Sequence record: NC_048048.2
Direction: 5' to 3' (one strand)
DNA length: 64,000 bases
Positions within the stretch are counted from its first letter, which is position 1; each line of letters opens with the position of its first letter. Positions 36,567 to 41,330 of this stretch are shown piece after piece. Both the position numbers and the translations under genes were made by a program. The notes beneath the pieces are model-generated. The model was not told where the DNA came from, did no database searches, and saw only the letters and a list, made by a program, of their open reading frames with translations.

Positions 36567-36886
36567 CCCGCGCCACCGATGCGATGCTCAAGCTCGCCGC
36601 CGAGATCGAGGAGGCCGAAAGCCGCCTGTCGGCCGCCACCGACTACTGGGCCGATCGCCAGAAGGACTACCTCAACGCCACCGAGGAGACCGACGACGCC
36701 AAGGTCCTGGCCGCCATTCAACTCAAAGCCCTGGTCGCCTATGAGCAGGTGGTCGACGCCATCGCCTTCAAGGGCGTGATGGTCGTCCAGCTTCGACGCC
36801 TCCAGAAGGCCCGCAGCGACGAGATCGCCCGCCGGGGCCAAGCCCGCAAGCGCCTGGGCGGCGCCGACGATCGCGAGGCGGCCTGA
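36563..36886 (+). CDS. coiled-coil hypothetical protein
   Basis: ATGA overlap. Confidence 0.75.
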   Translation: MTRATDAMLKLAAEIEEAESRLSAATDYWADRQKDYLNATEETDDAKVLAAIQLKALVAYEQVVDAIAFKGVMVVQLRRLQKARSDEIARRGQARKRLGGADDREAA

Positions 36887-36887
36887 C

Positions 36888-37610
36888 ATGCCCGTGCTCG
36901 CCAACGCCAAGCAGGAGCTTTACTGCAAGCACCGCGCCAACGGCTTCGTGCCCAAGAAGGCCGCCCAGGCCGCCGGCTACGCCACCGGCAGCGCCGTCTA
37001 CCAGGGCCTGGAGGAAGACGCCGATGTCGTCGCCCGCATCCATGAACTGATCGACGAGCGCAATGAGGCGAAAGCCGCGCGCATGGCCGCCGCCCAGGCC
37101 AAGGCGCTCGCCGAGGGCCACACCGTCGGCACCATGACCGGCGTCTCCCACGCCTGGGTCATCGAGCAATTGAAGATGAACGCCGAGGACGCGCGCGAGA
37201 GCGGCGACTTCAAGGAAAGCAACGCGTCCCTGAAGCTGATCGGCGAAGCCTTGGGCATGTGGGGCGGAGGCCTTGCCGGCAAGGACGGCGCCGGCCCTGG
37301 CCTGCTCAATGGACCGGGCGAAGGCCCGACCCTGATCGACATCGACTCGATCGAGAAGCTGATCGGCGTCACCGACCAGTTCCACCAAGCCGCCTTGGCC
37401 GCGCCCGCCGAACTCAGTGTCGAGGACCGCGACATCGCCATGAACCTGATCGCGGGCCAGGGCTCGAAGAATCTGGCTGGCGATCGCCAGCTTTCCACCG
37501 GCAGCGAGACCGACGTCGCCCTGCAACTGCTCGACGCCCTTGACGAGGGCGAGAGCGAAATCGCCGCGCGCGAGATCATCCCGCCGCCGCCCTATCAAGA
37601 CGAGGACTAG
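36888..37610 (+). CDS. terS: terminase small subunit
   Basis: LANAKQELYC...KKAAQAAGYA...VVARIHEL (Terminase_2-type N-terminus); upstream of TerL. Confidence 0.75.
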   Translation: MPVLANAKQELYCKHRANGFVPKKAAQAAGYATGSAVYQGLEEDADVVARIHELIDERNEAKAARMAAAQAKALAEGHTVGTMTGVSHAWVIEQLKMNAEDARESGDFKESNASLKLIGEALGMWGGGLAGKDGAGPGLLNGPGEGPTLIDIDSIEKLIGVTDQFHQAALAAPAELSVEDRDIAMNLIAGQGSKNLAGDRQLSTGSETDVALQLLDALDEGESEIAAREIIPPPPYQDED

Positions 37611-37615
37611 AGATC

Positions 37616-37765
37616 ATGGGCCAGCCCAACTTCGCTCCCAATTCGCCGCTGGTCGGCTTCAAGAAGTTCCTGCTCGGCGGCACGGCCGTCTATCGCCTCG
37701 CCATGACCGAGACCACCGTCAAGTCGGCCTATGGCGAGATCAAGGCCTGGGGCGTGCGGGGCTGA
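37616..37765 (+). CDS. 49-aa hypothetical protein
   Basis: MGQPNFAPNS...WGVRG*, coupled downstream. Confidence 0.55.
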   Translation: MGQPNFAPNSPLVGFKKFLLGGTAVYRLAMTETTVKSAYGEIKAWGVRG

Positions 37766-37914
37766 TGCGCGCGCGTCTGGCCCTCCTCCTGGCCGGGATC
37801 ACCGGCGCTCTGGTCTTGTCGCTCACCCGCCCGGTCAGCGCCAGGACCAAGCTGATCTCCCTGGCCGCGCGTCCGCCCTGGGTGGGCAGAAAGCTCCCCG
37901 CCCACACCGCCTGA
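37765..37914 (+). CDS. 49-aa protein with signal/TM segment
   Basis: MRARLALLLAGITGALVLSL; TGATG overlap. Confidence 0.5.
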   Translation: MRARLALLLAGITGALVLSLTRPVSARTKLISLAARPPWVGRKLPAHTA

Positions 37915-38001
37915 AACCTTTCAAGGCCCGCCCGATCAACGAGGCGGGCCAAACCCATTTTCGATGACGAGTAGCCCTCACCAACCTGGACTGCTCATCC
38001 T

Positions 38002-40818
38002 GTGACCCTTAGTACCCTTAAGCCCCCCGTTTCGCCCTATCCCCACGAGGAGCGCGCCAAGCGTCGCGCCGGCGTGCGCCGCATGCGCAAGCTCGCCGAG
38101 GACATCCGCGACGATCACGTCCGGGGCCGGGACCAGGACCCCCAGCGCGCCACCGCCGCCACCGCCATCACCGGCGTGTCCGAGCCCCGGCACCAAGTCG
38201 CCGTGCTGGAGCAGATCGCCGACAAAATCCAGACCGAGCACCTGGACAAGCTCTATCCGCTGGCGCGCGACGACTTCTCGGCCTTCTGCGAGGTCATCAG
38301 CCCCGAGGAGCCGCCCGAAAGCCCCTGGCACATCTGGCTGACAAATTTCCTGCAAGAGGTCGAGCTTTCGCCCGATCTCAACAAGGTCGTGCTCAACGTG
38401 CCGCCCGGCCACGCCAAGCCCCTGCACGAGGACACCCTGGTGCTGATGGGCGATGGCGCCTATCGGCCGCTCAAGGACATCGCCGTCGGCGATACGGTCT
38501 GGACCCATGCCGGCCGCGCCCGCCCCGTCACCGCCGTCCACGAGCAGGGCAAGCTTTCCACCGTCGAGATCGTCACCGAGGCCGGCCGTATCGTGCGCGC
38601 CGCCCCCGACCACCCGTTCCTGGTCAAGCTGGGGACCAGGGACGATGGGACCCCGATCGCCGAGTGGATCAACGCCGGCGACCTGCGGCCGGGCATGCCC
38701 GTGGTGCTCTCGGCCCACAAGCCGCCGAGCATTGAGCGCCTGCGCTATGACGGCGACCACACCACGCCCGAGACCTACGACAAGCACCTGCGCCGGGCCG
38801 AGGCGCTGGGCTACATGGCGCTGGGCGGCGCCCTGCACTGGCAGAAGTCCAAGACCCAGGTCACCCCCTCGCCGGACTTTAGGCTGTCGACCCACAAGCG
38901 CGCGCTGATGAAGCACATCGTCAAGCTGGTCAAGACCGGCCTTGGCCATCACATCAGCGTCTGCAAGGTCGCCTCCCAGAACACCTTCGTCGCGCGCCTG
39001 GGCGTCAAGGGCTTTCGCGATCTCAACGCCGGCGACTGGTTCACCTACGAGCCCGAAAAGCGCCGCGTCCCGCCGGTCATCTTCACGTCGAGCAAGGACG
39101 AGATCGCCGCCTTTCTGGGCGCGGCCTTCTCCCTGCGCGGCGAGGTCATCCGCCGGCTGCGCGGCAAGAACCTGCGCCTCTACCATCGCTCGATGGACCT
39201 GCTGCTGGACGTGCAGAAGTTGTGTGCGACGCTGGGGGCCACAGGAAGCCTCGACAGGGGCGATCCTGATTTTGGCGGCCGACCCTGCCTGAACCTCGAC
39301 TTCGCCGCTGTGGAGGCCCTCCAGGCGGCCGGAGTGACCTTCGACGGCGAGACCGACATCGACCTCGTCAACCAGCCGCCCTTCACCATGCTGATCCCGC
39401 GTCCGAGCGACACCGACGCGGTCGTCTCGGTGCTGCCGGCCAAGAAGGCCCGCTGCCTGTGCCTGACCGTCGAGGAGGACCACAGCTTCACGGCCGAGAC
39501 CCTGGTGGTCAAGAACTCCACCTACGCCTCGCGCCTGTTCGTGGCGTGGCGCCTGGGCCGCGATCCCAACCAGCGCATCATCGGCGGCGGCCACAGCCAG
39601 AACTTCGTCGAAAACGAGTTCTCGGCCAAAATCCGCAACATCGTCGAGAGCCCCGAGTTCCAGCGCGTCTTCCCCGGCATCACCGTCGACCACAAGACCA
39701 ACGCCAAGCAGCAGTGGGCGATCGCCGGCTACAAGGGCCAGTACGTGGCGCGCGGCGTGGGCCAGGGCATCCACGGTTTCCGCGCCACCTTCATCTGCGT
39801 CGACGACCCCTACTCCAAGATCGAGGACGCCAACAGCCCCGTCCACCGCCGCAAGGTCGAGCAGTGGTTCGACGCCGATATCGGCTCTCGCGCCCTGCCC
39901 AACTGCAAGACCTTCCTCATCATGACCCGCTTCCATGGCGAGGATTTGACTAATCACCTGGAGGAGATGAATAAGGTCCTCCCCGACAATGCAAAGTGGA
40001 AGATCGTTACTGTTCCGGCGATCTGTTTTGATGAAGAGACTGATCTTCTAGGCCGCAAGATCGGGGAATTTTTGTGGGATTACTATCCGTTGTCCTACTT
40101 TGTTGACAAGAAGATTCAGTTTGGATTTTTGGGTTTCGCCCTCACCTACCAACAGGTGTCGTCTGCCGCAAATCCCGACAACATCGCCAGCAAGTTCAAC
40201 TTCTACGATTTTCTGCCCCACGAGTCGCCTGAAGCCAAGGCCCGCGCGCCGCTCGACCAGTTCGGTCGGCCGCAGATTAACGAGAGTGATTTTTACCGGC
40301 GCACCATCGTCTCGGTCGACACCGCCTCCAAGACCACCGAACGGGCCGACTACACCGTCGTCCAGGTCTGGCGCGAGGATTTCAAGGGCAAGCACTATCT
40401 CGTCCATCAGGATCGCCGGAAGGTTGAGTTCAACGATCTGATCTCGATGATCGAGGCGCCGGCCATCAAGTACCGGGCCGATCAAATCCTTGTCGAGGAC
40501 AAGGGCTCGGGCACCCAGTACCTCCAGAACCGGGGCTCGACCGACAACCAGAAGCGTCAGGCCCCCTGCCCGCTGGTGGCGGTCAATCCGGGCGTGGCCG
40601 GCAAGAGCTTCCGCTTCGATGGGGTCACGCCGATGATCGAGGCCGGCGATGTCTGGCTGCCCAAGGACGCCCCCTGGATCGAGCAGCTTCTGGTCGAGGT
40701 GGGCCAGTTCCCCGACAGCGCCCACGATGACCAAGTCGACGCCATGAGCCAGTACCTCAACCACGCCAAGAAGAACCGCACCCGTTACGGCAGCCGCAAG
40801 ATCACCAAGCACACCTGA
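38002..40818 (+). CDS. terL: terminase large subunit, intein-containing (start uncertain)
   Basis: Walker A VPPGHAK/ST split by intein; Walker B ICVDDP; IMTRFH; nuclease SVDTAS, VEDKGSG and HDDQVDAMSQ. Confidence 0.95.
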   Translation: MTLSTLKPPVSPYPHEERAKRRAGVRRMRKLAEDIRDDHVRGRDQDPQRATAATAITGVSEPRHQVAVLEQIADKIQTEHLDKLYPLARDDFSAFCEVISPEEPPESPWHIWLTNFLQEVELSPDLNKVVLNVPPGHAKPLHEDTLVLMGDGAYRPLKDIAVGDTVWTHAGRARPVTAVHEQGKLSTVEIVTEAGRIVRAAPDHPFLVKLGTRDDGTPIAEWINAGDLRPGMPVVLSAHKPPSIERLRYDGDHTTPETYDKHLRRAEALGYMALGGALHWQKSKTQVTPSPDFRLSTHKRALMKHIVKLVKTGLGHHISVCKVASQNTFVARLGVKGFRDLNAGDWFTYEPEKRRVPPVIFTSSKDEIAAFLGAAFSLRGEVIRRLRGKNLRLYHRSMDLLLDVQKLCATLGATGSLDRGDPDFGGRPCLNLDFAAVEALQAAGVTFDGETDIDLVNQPPFTMLIPRPSDTDAVVSVLPAKKARCLCLTVEEDHSFTAETLVVKNSTYASRLFVAWRLGRDPNQRIIGGGHSQNFVENEFSAKIRNIVESPEFQRVFPGITVDHKTNAKQQWAIAGYKGQYVARGVGQGIHGFRATFICVDDPYSKIEDANSPVHRRKVEQWFDADIGSRALPNCKTFLIMTRFHGEDLTNHLEEMNKVLPDNAKWKIVTVPAICFDEETDLLGRKIGEFLWDYYPLSYFVDKKIQFGFLGFALTYQQVSSAANPDNIASKFNFYDFLPHESPEAKARAPLDQFGRPQINESDFYRRTIVSVDTASKTTERADYTVVQVWREDFKGKHYLVHQDRRKVEFNDLISMIEAPAIKYRADQILVEDKGSGTQYLQNRGSTDNQKRQAPCPLVAVNPGVAGKSFRFDGVTPMIEAGDVWLPKDAPWIEQLLVEVGQFPDSAHDDQVDAMSQYLNHAKKNRTRYGSRKITKHT
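38419..39516 (+). mobile_element. 366-aa intein with degenerate LAGLIDADG domain
   Basis: block A PLHEDTLV, block B AAPDHPF, block F RCLCLTVEEDHSF, block G VVKN/S; block C LGYMALGG and block E FLGAAFSLRG. Confidence 0.9.
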
Positions 40819-41258
40819 TGACCACCCTGGCTTACAAGGACGGCGTCCTGGCCGCCGACACCCGCATCTGCGACGGCACCCTGATGCTGGGCGTCTTCAC
40901 CAAGATCAGGCGCATCGGCCCGGTCTTGACGGCCGGCTGCGGCAACGCCCAGGACGTGGCCAAGTTCAACGCCTGGGTCAGCAGCGGGATGGAGGGCGAG
41001 TTCAGTATGGGCGAAAGCGAGTGCTGGCTGATCGCCCCCGGCCAGCCTGTCCTGATCTACGAGAACGACACCTTCCTGCGCATCGACGCGCCGTTCTACG
41101 CCAGCGGCACGGGCGGCGAGATCGCCCGAGGCGCCATGGCGATGGGGGCCGACGCGGTCACGGCCGTGCGCCAAGCCATCCTCCACGACAGCGCCACAGG
41201 CCCGCCGATCGACGTCCTCTACCTGGACGGCCGCCCCGGCGAGCGGCTGGCGGCCTGA
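40818..41258 (+). CDS. HslV/proteasome-beta-like Ntn hydrolase
   Basis: MTTLAY...LAADT...TKI...AGCG...ASGTGGEIARGAM...D..TG. Confidence 0.8.
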   Translation: MTTLAYKDGVLAADTRICDGTLMLGVFTKIRRIGPVLTAGCGNAQDVAKFNAWVSSGMEGEFSMGESECWLIAPGQPVLIYENDTFLRIDAPFYASGTGGEIARGAMAMGADAVTAVRQAILHDSATGPPIDVLYLDGRPGERLAA

Positions 41259-41330
41259 TCCGCCCAAGACCACGATCGGCGACATCTTCAGACAGTCGCC
41301 GATCGTCGACTTTGCCCCCTGTGGGGCGCG

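Follow-up and report, generated by a model that had tools for sequence, protein, structure and literature searches.

The 64-kb stretch of DNA analysed here (the window) is the right-hand end of the genome record of Caulobacter phage CcrSC (MH588547.2 / NC_048048.2), a Bertelyvirus of the Dolichocephalovirinae (phiCbK-like phages). In a megablast search, positions 36800–41300 matched CcrSC at 100% along their entire length. CcrSC is a lytic jumbo siphophage with a 317-kb record and is grown on Caulobacter vibrioides CB15. On the forward strand at 38002–40818 lies terL, the gene for the precursor of the terminase large subunit (TerL). This open reading frame (ORF) has Terminase_6C and TIGR01630 matches and is 100% identical to CcrSC gp501, ‘putative terminase large subunit’. 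The precursor of 938 amino acids (aa) and 105.4 kDa is interrupted by an intein of 366 aa and 40.2 kDa (Pro1 to Asn366; 38419–39516, forward strand), identified from the translation, intein-free alleles, HMMER, AlphaFold and Foldseek; the predicted spliced product has 572 aa and 65.3 kDa. The N-extein (aa 1–139; 38002–38418, forward strand) ends with the first part of the Walker A motif, PPGHAK (38401–38418). The C-extein (aa 506–938; 39517–40818, forward strand) begins with ST, the remainder of this motif, and holds the remaining ATPase domain and an RNase-H-like nuclease domain. The CcrSC record carries no intein annotation in terL.

An original prediction for this stretch had placed an intein at 38419–39516, splitting the TerL Walker A motif as PPGHAK/ST, and these coordinates proved exact. 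With the terL start at 38002, residue 140 begins at nucleotide 38419 and residue 505 ends at nucleotide 39516; the translation across the element (38380–39560) reads NVPPGHAK/PLHEDTLVLMGDG...AAPDHPFLV...ARCLCLTVEEDHSFTAETLVVKN/STYASR. A set of 118 TerL homologues was drawn from a search of 5.8 billion proteins. The same insertion point is occupied in 70 of them, and about 20 intein-free homologues are contiguous as PPGHAKSTYASR (P0061, P0063, P0064, P0075 and P0079–P0093). P0061, P0063 and P0064 are natural metagenomic intein-free alleles within the intein-bearing clade. Since the intein-free proteins match Pfam Terminase_6N from the Walker A motif onward, the insert splits this motif between Lys and Ser, and since they are contiguous, the splice junctions and Pro1 are unambiguous. 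The proline predicted at position 1 thus stands. A mis-set boundary hiding a Cys or Ser at position 1 was considered and rejected, as the intein-free alleles fix the junctions and a one-residue shift fails to regenerate GHAKST.

The sequence features expected of an intein were found: contiguous intein-free alleles, HINT blocks A, B, F and G, a terminal Asn and a Ser at +1. Block A, PLHEDTLVLMGDG (38419–38457; all blocks lie on the forward strand), starts with Pro and has no N-terminal nucleophile. Block B, GRIVRAAPDHPFLV (38584–38625), holds His65 at B:10 (38611–38613) and Phe67 at B:12 (38617–38619). Block F, RCLCLTVEEDHSFTAE (39451–39498), holds Cys346 at F:2 (39454–39456) and Cys348 at F:4 (39460–39462). 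Block G, ETLVVKN followed by Ser+1 (39496–39519), comprises Val364 (G:5), Lys365 (G:6) and Asn366 (G:7), with Ser+1 at 39517–39519. A LAGLIDADG-type endonuclease-like domain (38719–39393, limits approximate, forward strand) was recognised by a weak PF14528 match, an alignment with PI-PfuI and Foldseek. Within it lie block C, EALGYMALGGAL (38800–38835), block D, EKRRVPPVIF (39055–39084), and block E, IAAFLGAAFSLRGEV (39103–39147).

The assignment of the key residues was checked in three alignments. In a phmmer comparison with the PDB, the Mtu RecA mini-intein placed His65 on the B:10 His, Phe67 on B:12, Cys348 on the F:4 Asp and Lys365-Asn366 on the terminal His-Asn. Alignment of gp41-1_WCT through the family profile set Cys348 on the Cys of ICIEV, the residue engineered at F:4 in the gp41-1 study. 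Comparison by hhalign with inteins carrying the canonical Trp-Cys-Thr (W-C-T) triplet put Phe on Trp, Cys on Cys and Val on Thr. All three agree with the predicted Cys at F:4. The RecA and W-C-T alignments bear out Phe at B:12, and the latter Val at G:5, only one of the three triad residues being present; the RecA alignment also confirms the predicted Lys in place of the penultimate His.

TIGR01443 (intein_Cterm) scored above its cutoff and TIGR01445 just below; Pfam Hint and Intein_splicing matches remained under their gathering thresholds. An AlphaFold2 model of the intein, built with 68 sequences, reached a predicted local distance difference test (pLDDT) score of 93.1 and a predicted template modelling (pTM) score of 0.91. 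The best Foldseek matches of this model were the TliVMA intein (TM score 0.74), PI-SceI and PI-PfuI, and for the central domain I-DmoI. A HINT plus LAGLIDADG fold is hence predicted with confidence, and the element is a real intein domain rather than a chance resemblance.

Conservation was assessed over the 70 same-site TerL inteins. His at B:10, Cys at F:4, Asn at G:7 and Ser at +1 are present in all 70. Position 1 is Pro in 63, Asp in four and Ala in three; B:12 is Phe in 65, Val in two and Trp in three; F:2 is Cys in 61. At G:5, Val occurs 67 times and Thr three times, and at G:6, His 63 times and Lys seven times. The canonical W-C-T triplet is confined to the three Ala1 inteins, P0072, P0074 and P0078. 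Across 68 inteins (mean column identity 37%) only six columns are invariant, among them His B:10, Cys F:4 and Asn G:7.

With a Pro1-only profile, 1.84 billion representative proteins were searched exhaustively by HMMER, giving 2,728 matches at E≤1e-30; of the best 150, 126 were full-length, and residues were counted in these. Position 1 is Pro in 122, the remaining four being unaligned at that column. Cys is found at F:4 in 124 and at F:2 in 123, while G:5 is Val in 121 and Thr in one. B:12 is Phe in 97, otherwise Val (11), Ile (7), Tyr (4), Leu (3) or Met (3), and never Trp. G:6 is His in 113, Lys in five, Arg in four, Ser in two and Ala in one; the +1 residue is Ser in 103 and Thr in 23. The Pro1 / C-x-C family is defined here by Pro1, A-x-D-H-x-[FVIYLM], C-x-C-L-T-V and V-[HKR]-N/[ST], with an insertion that usually follows the Walker A Lys, and the CcrSC intein shows every element of this definition.

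Among unrelated terminases (PPGMMK/, PPRHGK/, PGSSGK/ and others), the Walker A Lys is likewise followed by inteins with Pro1, C-x-C-L-T-V and V-H-N/S-T. In bacterial RuvB proteins, too, a Pro1 / C-x-C intein comes directly behind this Lys, as GPPGLGK/P...VVHN/TT in P0121, P0122 and P0125 (Micromonospora). These inteins of Holliday-junction helicases are 30–34% identical to the phage intein, and P0125 seems to have kept its two LAGLIDADG motifs intact (LAGYLIGDG, FLGAYFACDG). Pro1 / C-x-C inteins also sit at another kind of site, at host residues ~300–770 and well away from the Walker A motif. There, the insertion reads EQEPG/P...HN/SGGK in P0159, P0194, P0224, P0235, P0260 and P0264, and DPGQAGK/P...HN/SQ in P0113, P0114, P0158 and P0185. 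The EQEPG/SGGK site was likened by eye to VEDKGSGTQY in the nuclease half of CcrSC TerL, which suggests a putative insertion in a nuclease motif.

The orthologous intein of phiCbK was annotated in 2012 as P131–N471 between K130 and S472 (Gill et al. 2012, BMC Genomics 13:542, PMC3556154). It was also annotated in CcrColossus and CcrRogue (PMC3556154). Gill et al. remarked that functional Pro1 inteins exist, citing the class 3 paper; the absence of the W-C-T triplet and the mechanism were not discussed (PMC3556154). The phiCbK and CcrSC inteins share the K/S junction of PPGHAKST, Pro1, DH-x-F, C-x-C-L-T-V, a degenerate LAGLIDADG domain and the same TerL clade, but intein identity between CcrSC and the phiCbK group is only ~30%. 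CcrSC, CcrBL9 and other Bertelyviruses end in Lys-Asn, whereas the phiCbK group ends in His-Asn. The original prediction had called the CcrSC intein atypical; its non-canonical signature is real, but it is not unique, as Phe-Cys-Val is the usual pattern throughout a very large family, of which the phiCbK orthologue was described in 2012. Within the literature covered, no report of a Pro1 family without W-C-T or of RuvB inteins was found. Within a large, coherent and little-studied Pro1 family, whose mechanism and relation to class 3 have so far gone unexamined in that literature, the CcrSC intein is a typical member.

The same holds for the penultimate residue. On the extein tree, the change from His to Lys at G:6 arose at least four times (the Bertelyvirus clade, P0057/58, P0011 and P0052), and Lys or Arg occupies G:6 in ~7% of the wider family, counted in the best library matches. 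Non-His penultimate residues including Lys are known from phage class 1 inteins, where they modulate splicing (PMC5050341). The penultimate Lys is a minor variant, unreported in a block-F-Cys context within the literature covered.

Class 3 inteins are defined by a non-nucleophilic residue 1 co-varying with Trp at B:12, Cys at F:4 and Thr at G:5, with Ser or Thr at +1 (PMC2807308, Tori et al. 2010). They are described as monophyletic, the other two positions being conserved in all (review, PMC4031507). In the structure of Msm DnaBi1, the class 3 nucleophile occupies the position of the class 1 F:4 Asp (PMC6195587), and a Cys-His-Thr triad with the G:5 Thr was proposed from a structural study (PMC7664689). 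Mutagenesis of MP-Be DnaB showed the F:4 Cys to be absolutely required (PMC2807308; PMC5222942), and T339 (G:5) to be the least important residue of the triplet (PMC2807308). In the same intein, W67F was the best-tolerated change at B:12, with about half of the protein spliced at 30°C and rescue at 15°C (PMC2807308).

Measured against this signature, the CcrSC intein has Pro1, Cys at F:4 and Ser at +1; Trp at B:12 is replaced by Phe67 and Thr at G:5 by Val364. With the class 3 inteins MP-Be DnaB, Msm DnaB-1, Mch DnaB1 and Dra Snf2 it shares the absence of an N-terminal nucleophile, the F:4 Cys, the B:10 His, the G:7 Asn, Ser or Thr at +1 and an insertion in the P-loop of a phage or helicase-type ATPase; in MP-Be DnaB, residue 1 is Pro as well. 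Apart from B:12 and G:5, the extra F:2 Cys sets the CcrSC family apart from class 3. Thr53 was considered as a stand-in for the missing G:5 Thr and rejected, as it is invariant in canonical W-C-T inteins too.

The canonical W-C-T inteins of P0072, P0074 and P0078 occupy the identical TerL site in relatives, and the two groups differ in block B. The Pro1 family has A-x-D-H-x-F, close to T-P-D-H-K-V of the class 1 Mtu RecA intein. The W-C-T inteins at this site have D-x-x-H-x-W in P0072, P0074 and P0078 and G-A-G-H-E-W in the other two, and Msm DnaBi1 has DxxH. P0076 and P0077 carry a W-C-T-type intein (TQCIAV...VTHN/T) one residue further on, at GHAKS/C, which begins with Cys and so unites the class 3 triplet with an N-terminal nucleophile.

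Profile searches separated the two groups in the same way. A profile of 27 Pro1 inteins matched 33 PDB sequences at E≤1e-3, down to 3e-17, with no class 3 structure among them; we take the matches that we recognised to be class 1 inteins and one bacterial intein-like domain. A profile of five W-C-T inteins of the same TerL site had the class 3 structures 6bs8, 6rix and 6riy as its top matches (1e-22 to 2.5e-21). Class 1 inteins (Mtu RecA / PI-MtuI, TliVMA, PI-PfuI, Ssp/Npu DnaB, gp41-1) are the closest sequence and structure matches of the CcrSC intein and share with it the hydrophobic B:12, Val at G:5 and the HINT plus LAGLIDADG architecture; they differ in having Cys or Ser at position 1 and Asp at F:4, where the CcrSC intein has Pro and Cys.

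In a tree of the HINT part only, the W-C-T group stands on a branch of length 2.0 and four class 1 inteins adjoin the Pro1 family. This tree is an unrooted three-clade star with only four class 1 inteins, compatible with one or two origins, and an approximately unbiased (AU) test on it, with the same four class 1 inteins, did not reject a topology holding the Pro1 group together (p = 0.58). That the Pro1 / C-x-C inteins represent a second, independent evolutionary route to splicing without an N-terminal nucleophile is a tentative proposal, somewhat less probable than its opposite. If it were true, the class 3 mechanism would be polyphyletic and the Cys-His-Thr triad dispensable.

The endonuclease of the CcrSC intein is dead. 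In the PI-PfuI alignment, Gly (block C) and Arg (block E) stand at the acidic positions of the GDG and AEG motifs, so the predicted absence of the catalytic Asp in both blocks was borne out. Both acidic residues are missing in all Pro1 inteins of the phiCbK clade, which lack what an active endonuclease requires. The block E Asp is kept in the family members of RuvB and other terminases, and both acidic residues are kept in the W-C-T inteins. An endonuclease encoded in another frame or antisense, as in some actinophage inteins, was also considered; a 659-aa antisense ORF at 37978–39957 has no Pfam match and is the usual high-GC artefact. The endonuclease-like domain has ratios of nonsynonymous to synonymous substitution rates (dN/dS) of 0.14–0.49 and folds confidently in the model, which suggests that it keeps a structural or other role.

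Inheritance of the intein is vertical. The pairwise distances of inteins track those of exteins closely (r = 0.82; Mantel test, p = 0.001), and in no pair were the inteins more alike than expected. In the extein phylogeny, a single clade of 65 TerLs is occupied by the Pro1 inteins, and three intein-free alleles are nested inside it. Those of the Ala1 W-C-T type occur here and there among TerLs that lack an intein and are almost identical, the pattern expected of mobile elements. With no intact motif in the phage clade, the intein behaves as the immobile element that had been predicted.

Several observations bear on splicing itself. CcrSC and at least ten lytic relatives form plaques, and the plaque-forming phages with an interrupted terL include CcrSC, CcrBL9, J4, C1, C2, BL47, RB23 and the phiCbK group. 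A tblastn search of these phage genomes with the C-extein found no second, uninterrupted terL, only a single locus. An extra match in some records is the terminal-repeat copy of the 3′ part of terL; CcrSC and CcrBL9 show two terL ‘places’ because the terminal repeat duplicates that part of the gene. As these phages are lytic and form plaques with terL-like sequence at one locus, an intein that fails to splice is very unlikely. The dN/dS of the intein is 0.15–0.47, versus 0.09–0.24 for the exteins (CcrSC compared with CcrBL9, BL47 or J4), and its reading frame is free of stops and frameshifts; the intein is under purifying selection.

Further support comes from two metagenomic phiCbK-like TerLs, P0046 (L005:3001–6762 and L006) and P0056, in which two inteins stand back to back at GHAK/ST with no extein residue between them. 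The first has Asp1, the canonical W-C-T triplet and intact LAGLIDADG motifs and ends in ...MTPTHN; it is followed by a Pro1 intein ending in ...VVVHN/STYASR. P0046 was recovered in independent assemblies of two samples, and the hosts of P0046 and P0056 fall in different TerL subclades. Because the +1 residue of the first intein is Pro, it would splice only after the Pro1 intein has left and supplied Ser+1, and the arrangement implies a probable obligatory order of splicing. Such tandem inteins make sense only if the Pro1 intein splices, which argues for splicing of the latter.

Taken together, the CcrSC element is in all likelihood a functional splicing intein, vertically inherited and endonuclease-dead, which most probably follows a class-3-type route with the F:4 Cys acting first on a class-1-like scaffold. 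Four residues known to be essential in class 3 (PMC2807308; PMC5222942) are the ones conserved here: His B:10, Cys F:4, Asn G:7 and Ser+1. In the same protein set, the residue at F:4 co-varies with residue 1, Asp accompanying Cys1 in class 1 inteins and Cys accompanying Pro, Asp, Ala or Glu at position 1.

The route, each chemical step of which we infer, could run as follows. TerL would be made as a 105-kDa precursor with the P-loop split between Lys139 and Ser506, and a precursor split in this way would be unable to bind ATP. In the folded intein, the inactive LAGLIDADG domain would be surrounded by the two HINT lobes (intein residues ~1–100 and 326–366). As residue 1 is Pro, the first acyl shift of class 1 is impossible. 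Instead, Cys348, aided by His65, would attack the Lys139 carbonyl, giving an N-extein thioester (the block-F branched intermediate). Ser+1 would then take over the N-extein (the block-G branched intermediate). Asn366 would cyclise beside Lys365, not His, to free the intein, and an O-to-N shift would remake PPGHAKST in an active TerL of 65 kDa.

Some points weigh against this route. The block-F thioester is deduced from the sequence, and of the three signature residues of class 3 the intein has only one. Moreover, the class 1 intein gp41-1 did not splice efficiently after W, C and T had been introduced into it (PMC7664689), so that an F:4 Cys alone does not suffice in every scaffold.

An addition to the class-3-type route would be that splicing is redox- or metal-gated and that this gating has been selected to time or safeguard packaging, which by analogy with other inteins is conceivable though doubtful. 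Cys346 and Cys348 would in that case form a reversible disulfide or bind a metal, leaving TerL inactive under oxidative stress, a model which we likewise hold to be unlikely. The C-x-C pair occurs in 61 of the 70 same-site inteins and in 123 of the 126 best full-length library matches. Both residues lie on one predicted beta strand (E332–351), and from strand geometry their side chains should therefore face the same side. A disulfide to the F:4 Cys reversibly inactivates the class 3 intein Msm DnaBi1 (PMC6195587), and H2O2 blocks N-cleavage by MchDnaB1 (PMC7664689). An endonuclease-dead intein has also been kept under purifying selection across the whole phage clade, but the difficulty of deleting it precisely can account for this. 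Some presumably functional members have Met or Thr at F:2, so the second Cys appears dispensable, and three precise losses within the clade (P0061, P0063 and P0064) indicate that the phage can do without the intein. Redox sensitivity of splicing is a reasonable, if speculative, hypothesis. The original prediction that splicing gates DNA packaging stands only trivially, in that packaging needs a re-joined P-loop.

Class-2-like splicing, in which the +1 residue attacks directly, would suit the class-1-like scaffold but is improbable. In this family, the +1 residue is always Ser or Thr, both of which are weaker nucleophiles than Cys when an amide has to be attacked directly. Wherever residue 1 is non-nucleophilic, F:4 is Cys without exception, and where residue 1 is Cys, F:4 is Asp. 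Like class 2 inteins, which are defined by exclusion, the CcrSC intein lacks both the N-terminal nucleophile and the W-C-T triplet (PMC2807308). However, the known class 2 inteins are all archaeal KlbA orthologues with Ala1, Cys+1, Asp at F:4 and Ser at G:6 (PMC4031507), and none of this holds for CcrSC with its Pro1, Ser+1, Cys at F:4 and Lys at G:6.

A decayed, non-splicing insertion, with TerL inactive or the insert tolerated or removed otherwise, might be suspected from the dead homing endonuclease, the missing penultimate His and two signature residues and the sub-threshold Pfam matches, but is hardly credible for a viable phage with a single terL whose P-loop is split between Lys and Ser, given an insert free of stops and frameshifts with dN/dS below 0.5 and strict conservation of His B:10, Cys F:4, Asn G:7 and Ser+1 over deep divergence.

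Around the intein, some further features of the locus were noted. Just upstream of terL lies terS, the putative terminase small subunit gene (36888–37610, forward strand; MH588547.2 annotation and ORF). Directly downstream, a gene at 40818–41258 (forward strand), listed in RefSeq as an HslV-family peptidase, overlaps the terL stop codon. A tRNA scan of the window found none. Inside the C-extein, the G+C content falls from ~0.66 to 0.50–0.54 over ~300–450 bp (window 39800–40250), with AT-rich codons, and this patch is kept at the homologous position in CcrBL9 and BL47 (L002:4600–4900; L004:4500–4950). The long terminal repeat of CcrSC is annotated to begin within it (record position 293544, window 40055); in BL47 and J4 the repeat begins near the terL end. 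Possible explanations are a signal at the DNA level, such as a site for packaging or replication, or else a patch left by recombination. In the GenBank annotation, window 40055–64000 is the right copy of a ~24-kb direct terminal repeat. As this copy starts inside terL, the left genome end carries a promoterless 3′ terL fragment.

For the annotation of these phages, the records of CcrSC and the Bertelyviruses should mark the intein and the mature TerL of 572 aa. Caulobacter CB15 and its jumbo phages offer a tractable system for asking whether an endonuclease-dead intein in a packaging ATPase is baggage or a post-translational switch. The family appears to have made the conversion from class 1 to class 3 naturally, with Phe and Val in place of Trp and Thr. 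Widespread and present in an essential phage enzyme, it constitutes a natural test of which residues the block-F-Cys mechanism needs, and its members are possible templates for engineered inteins that tolerate any residue at position 1.

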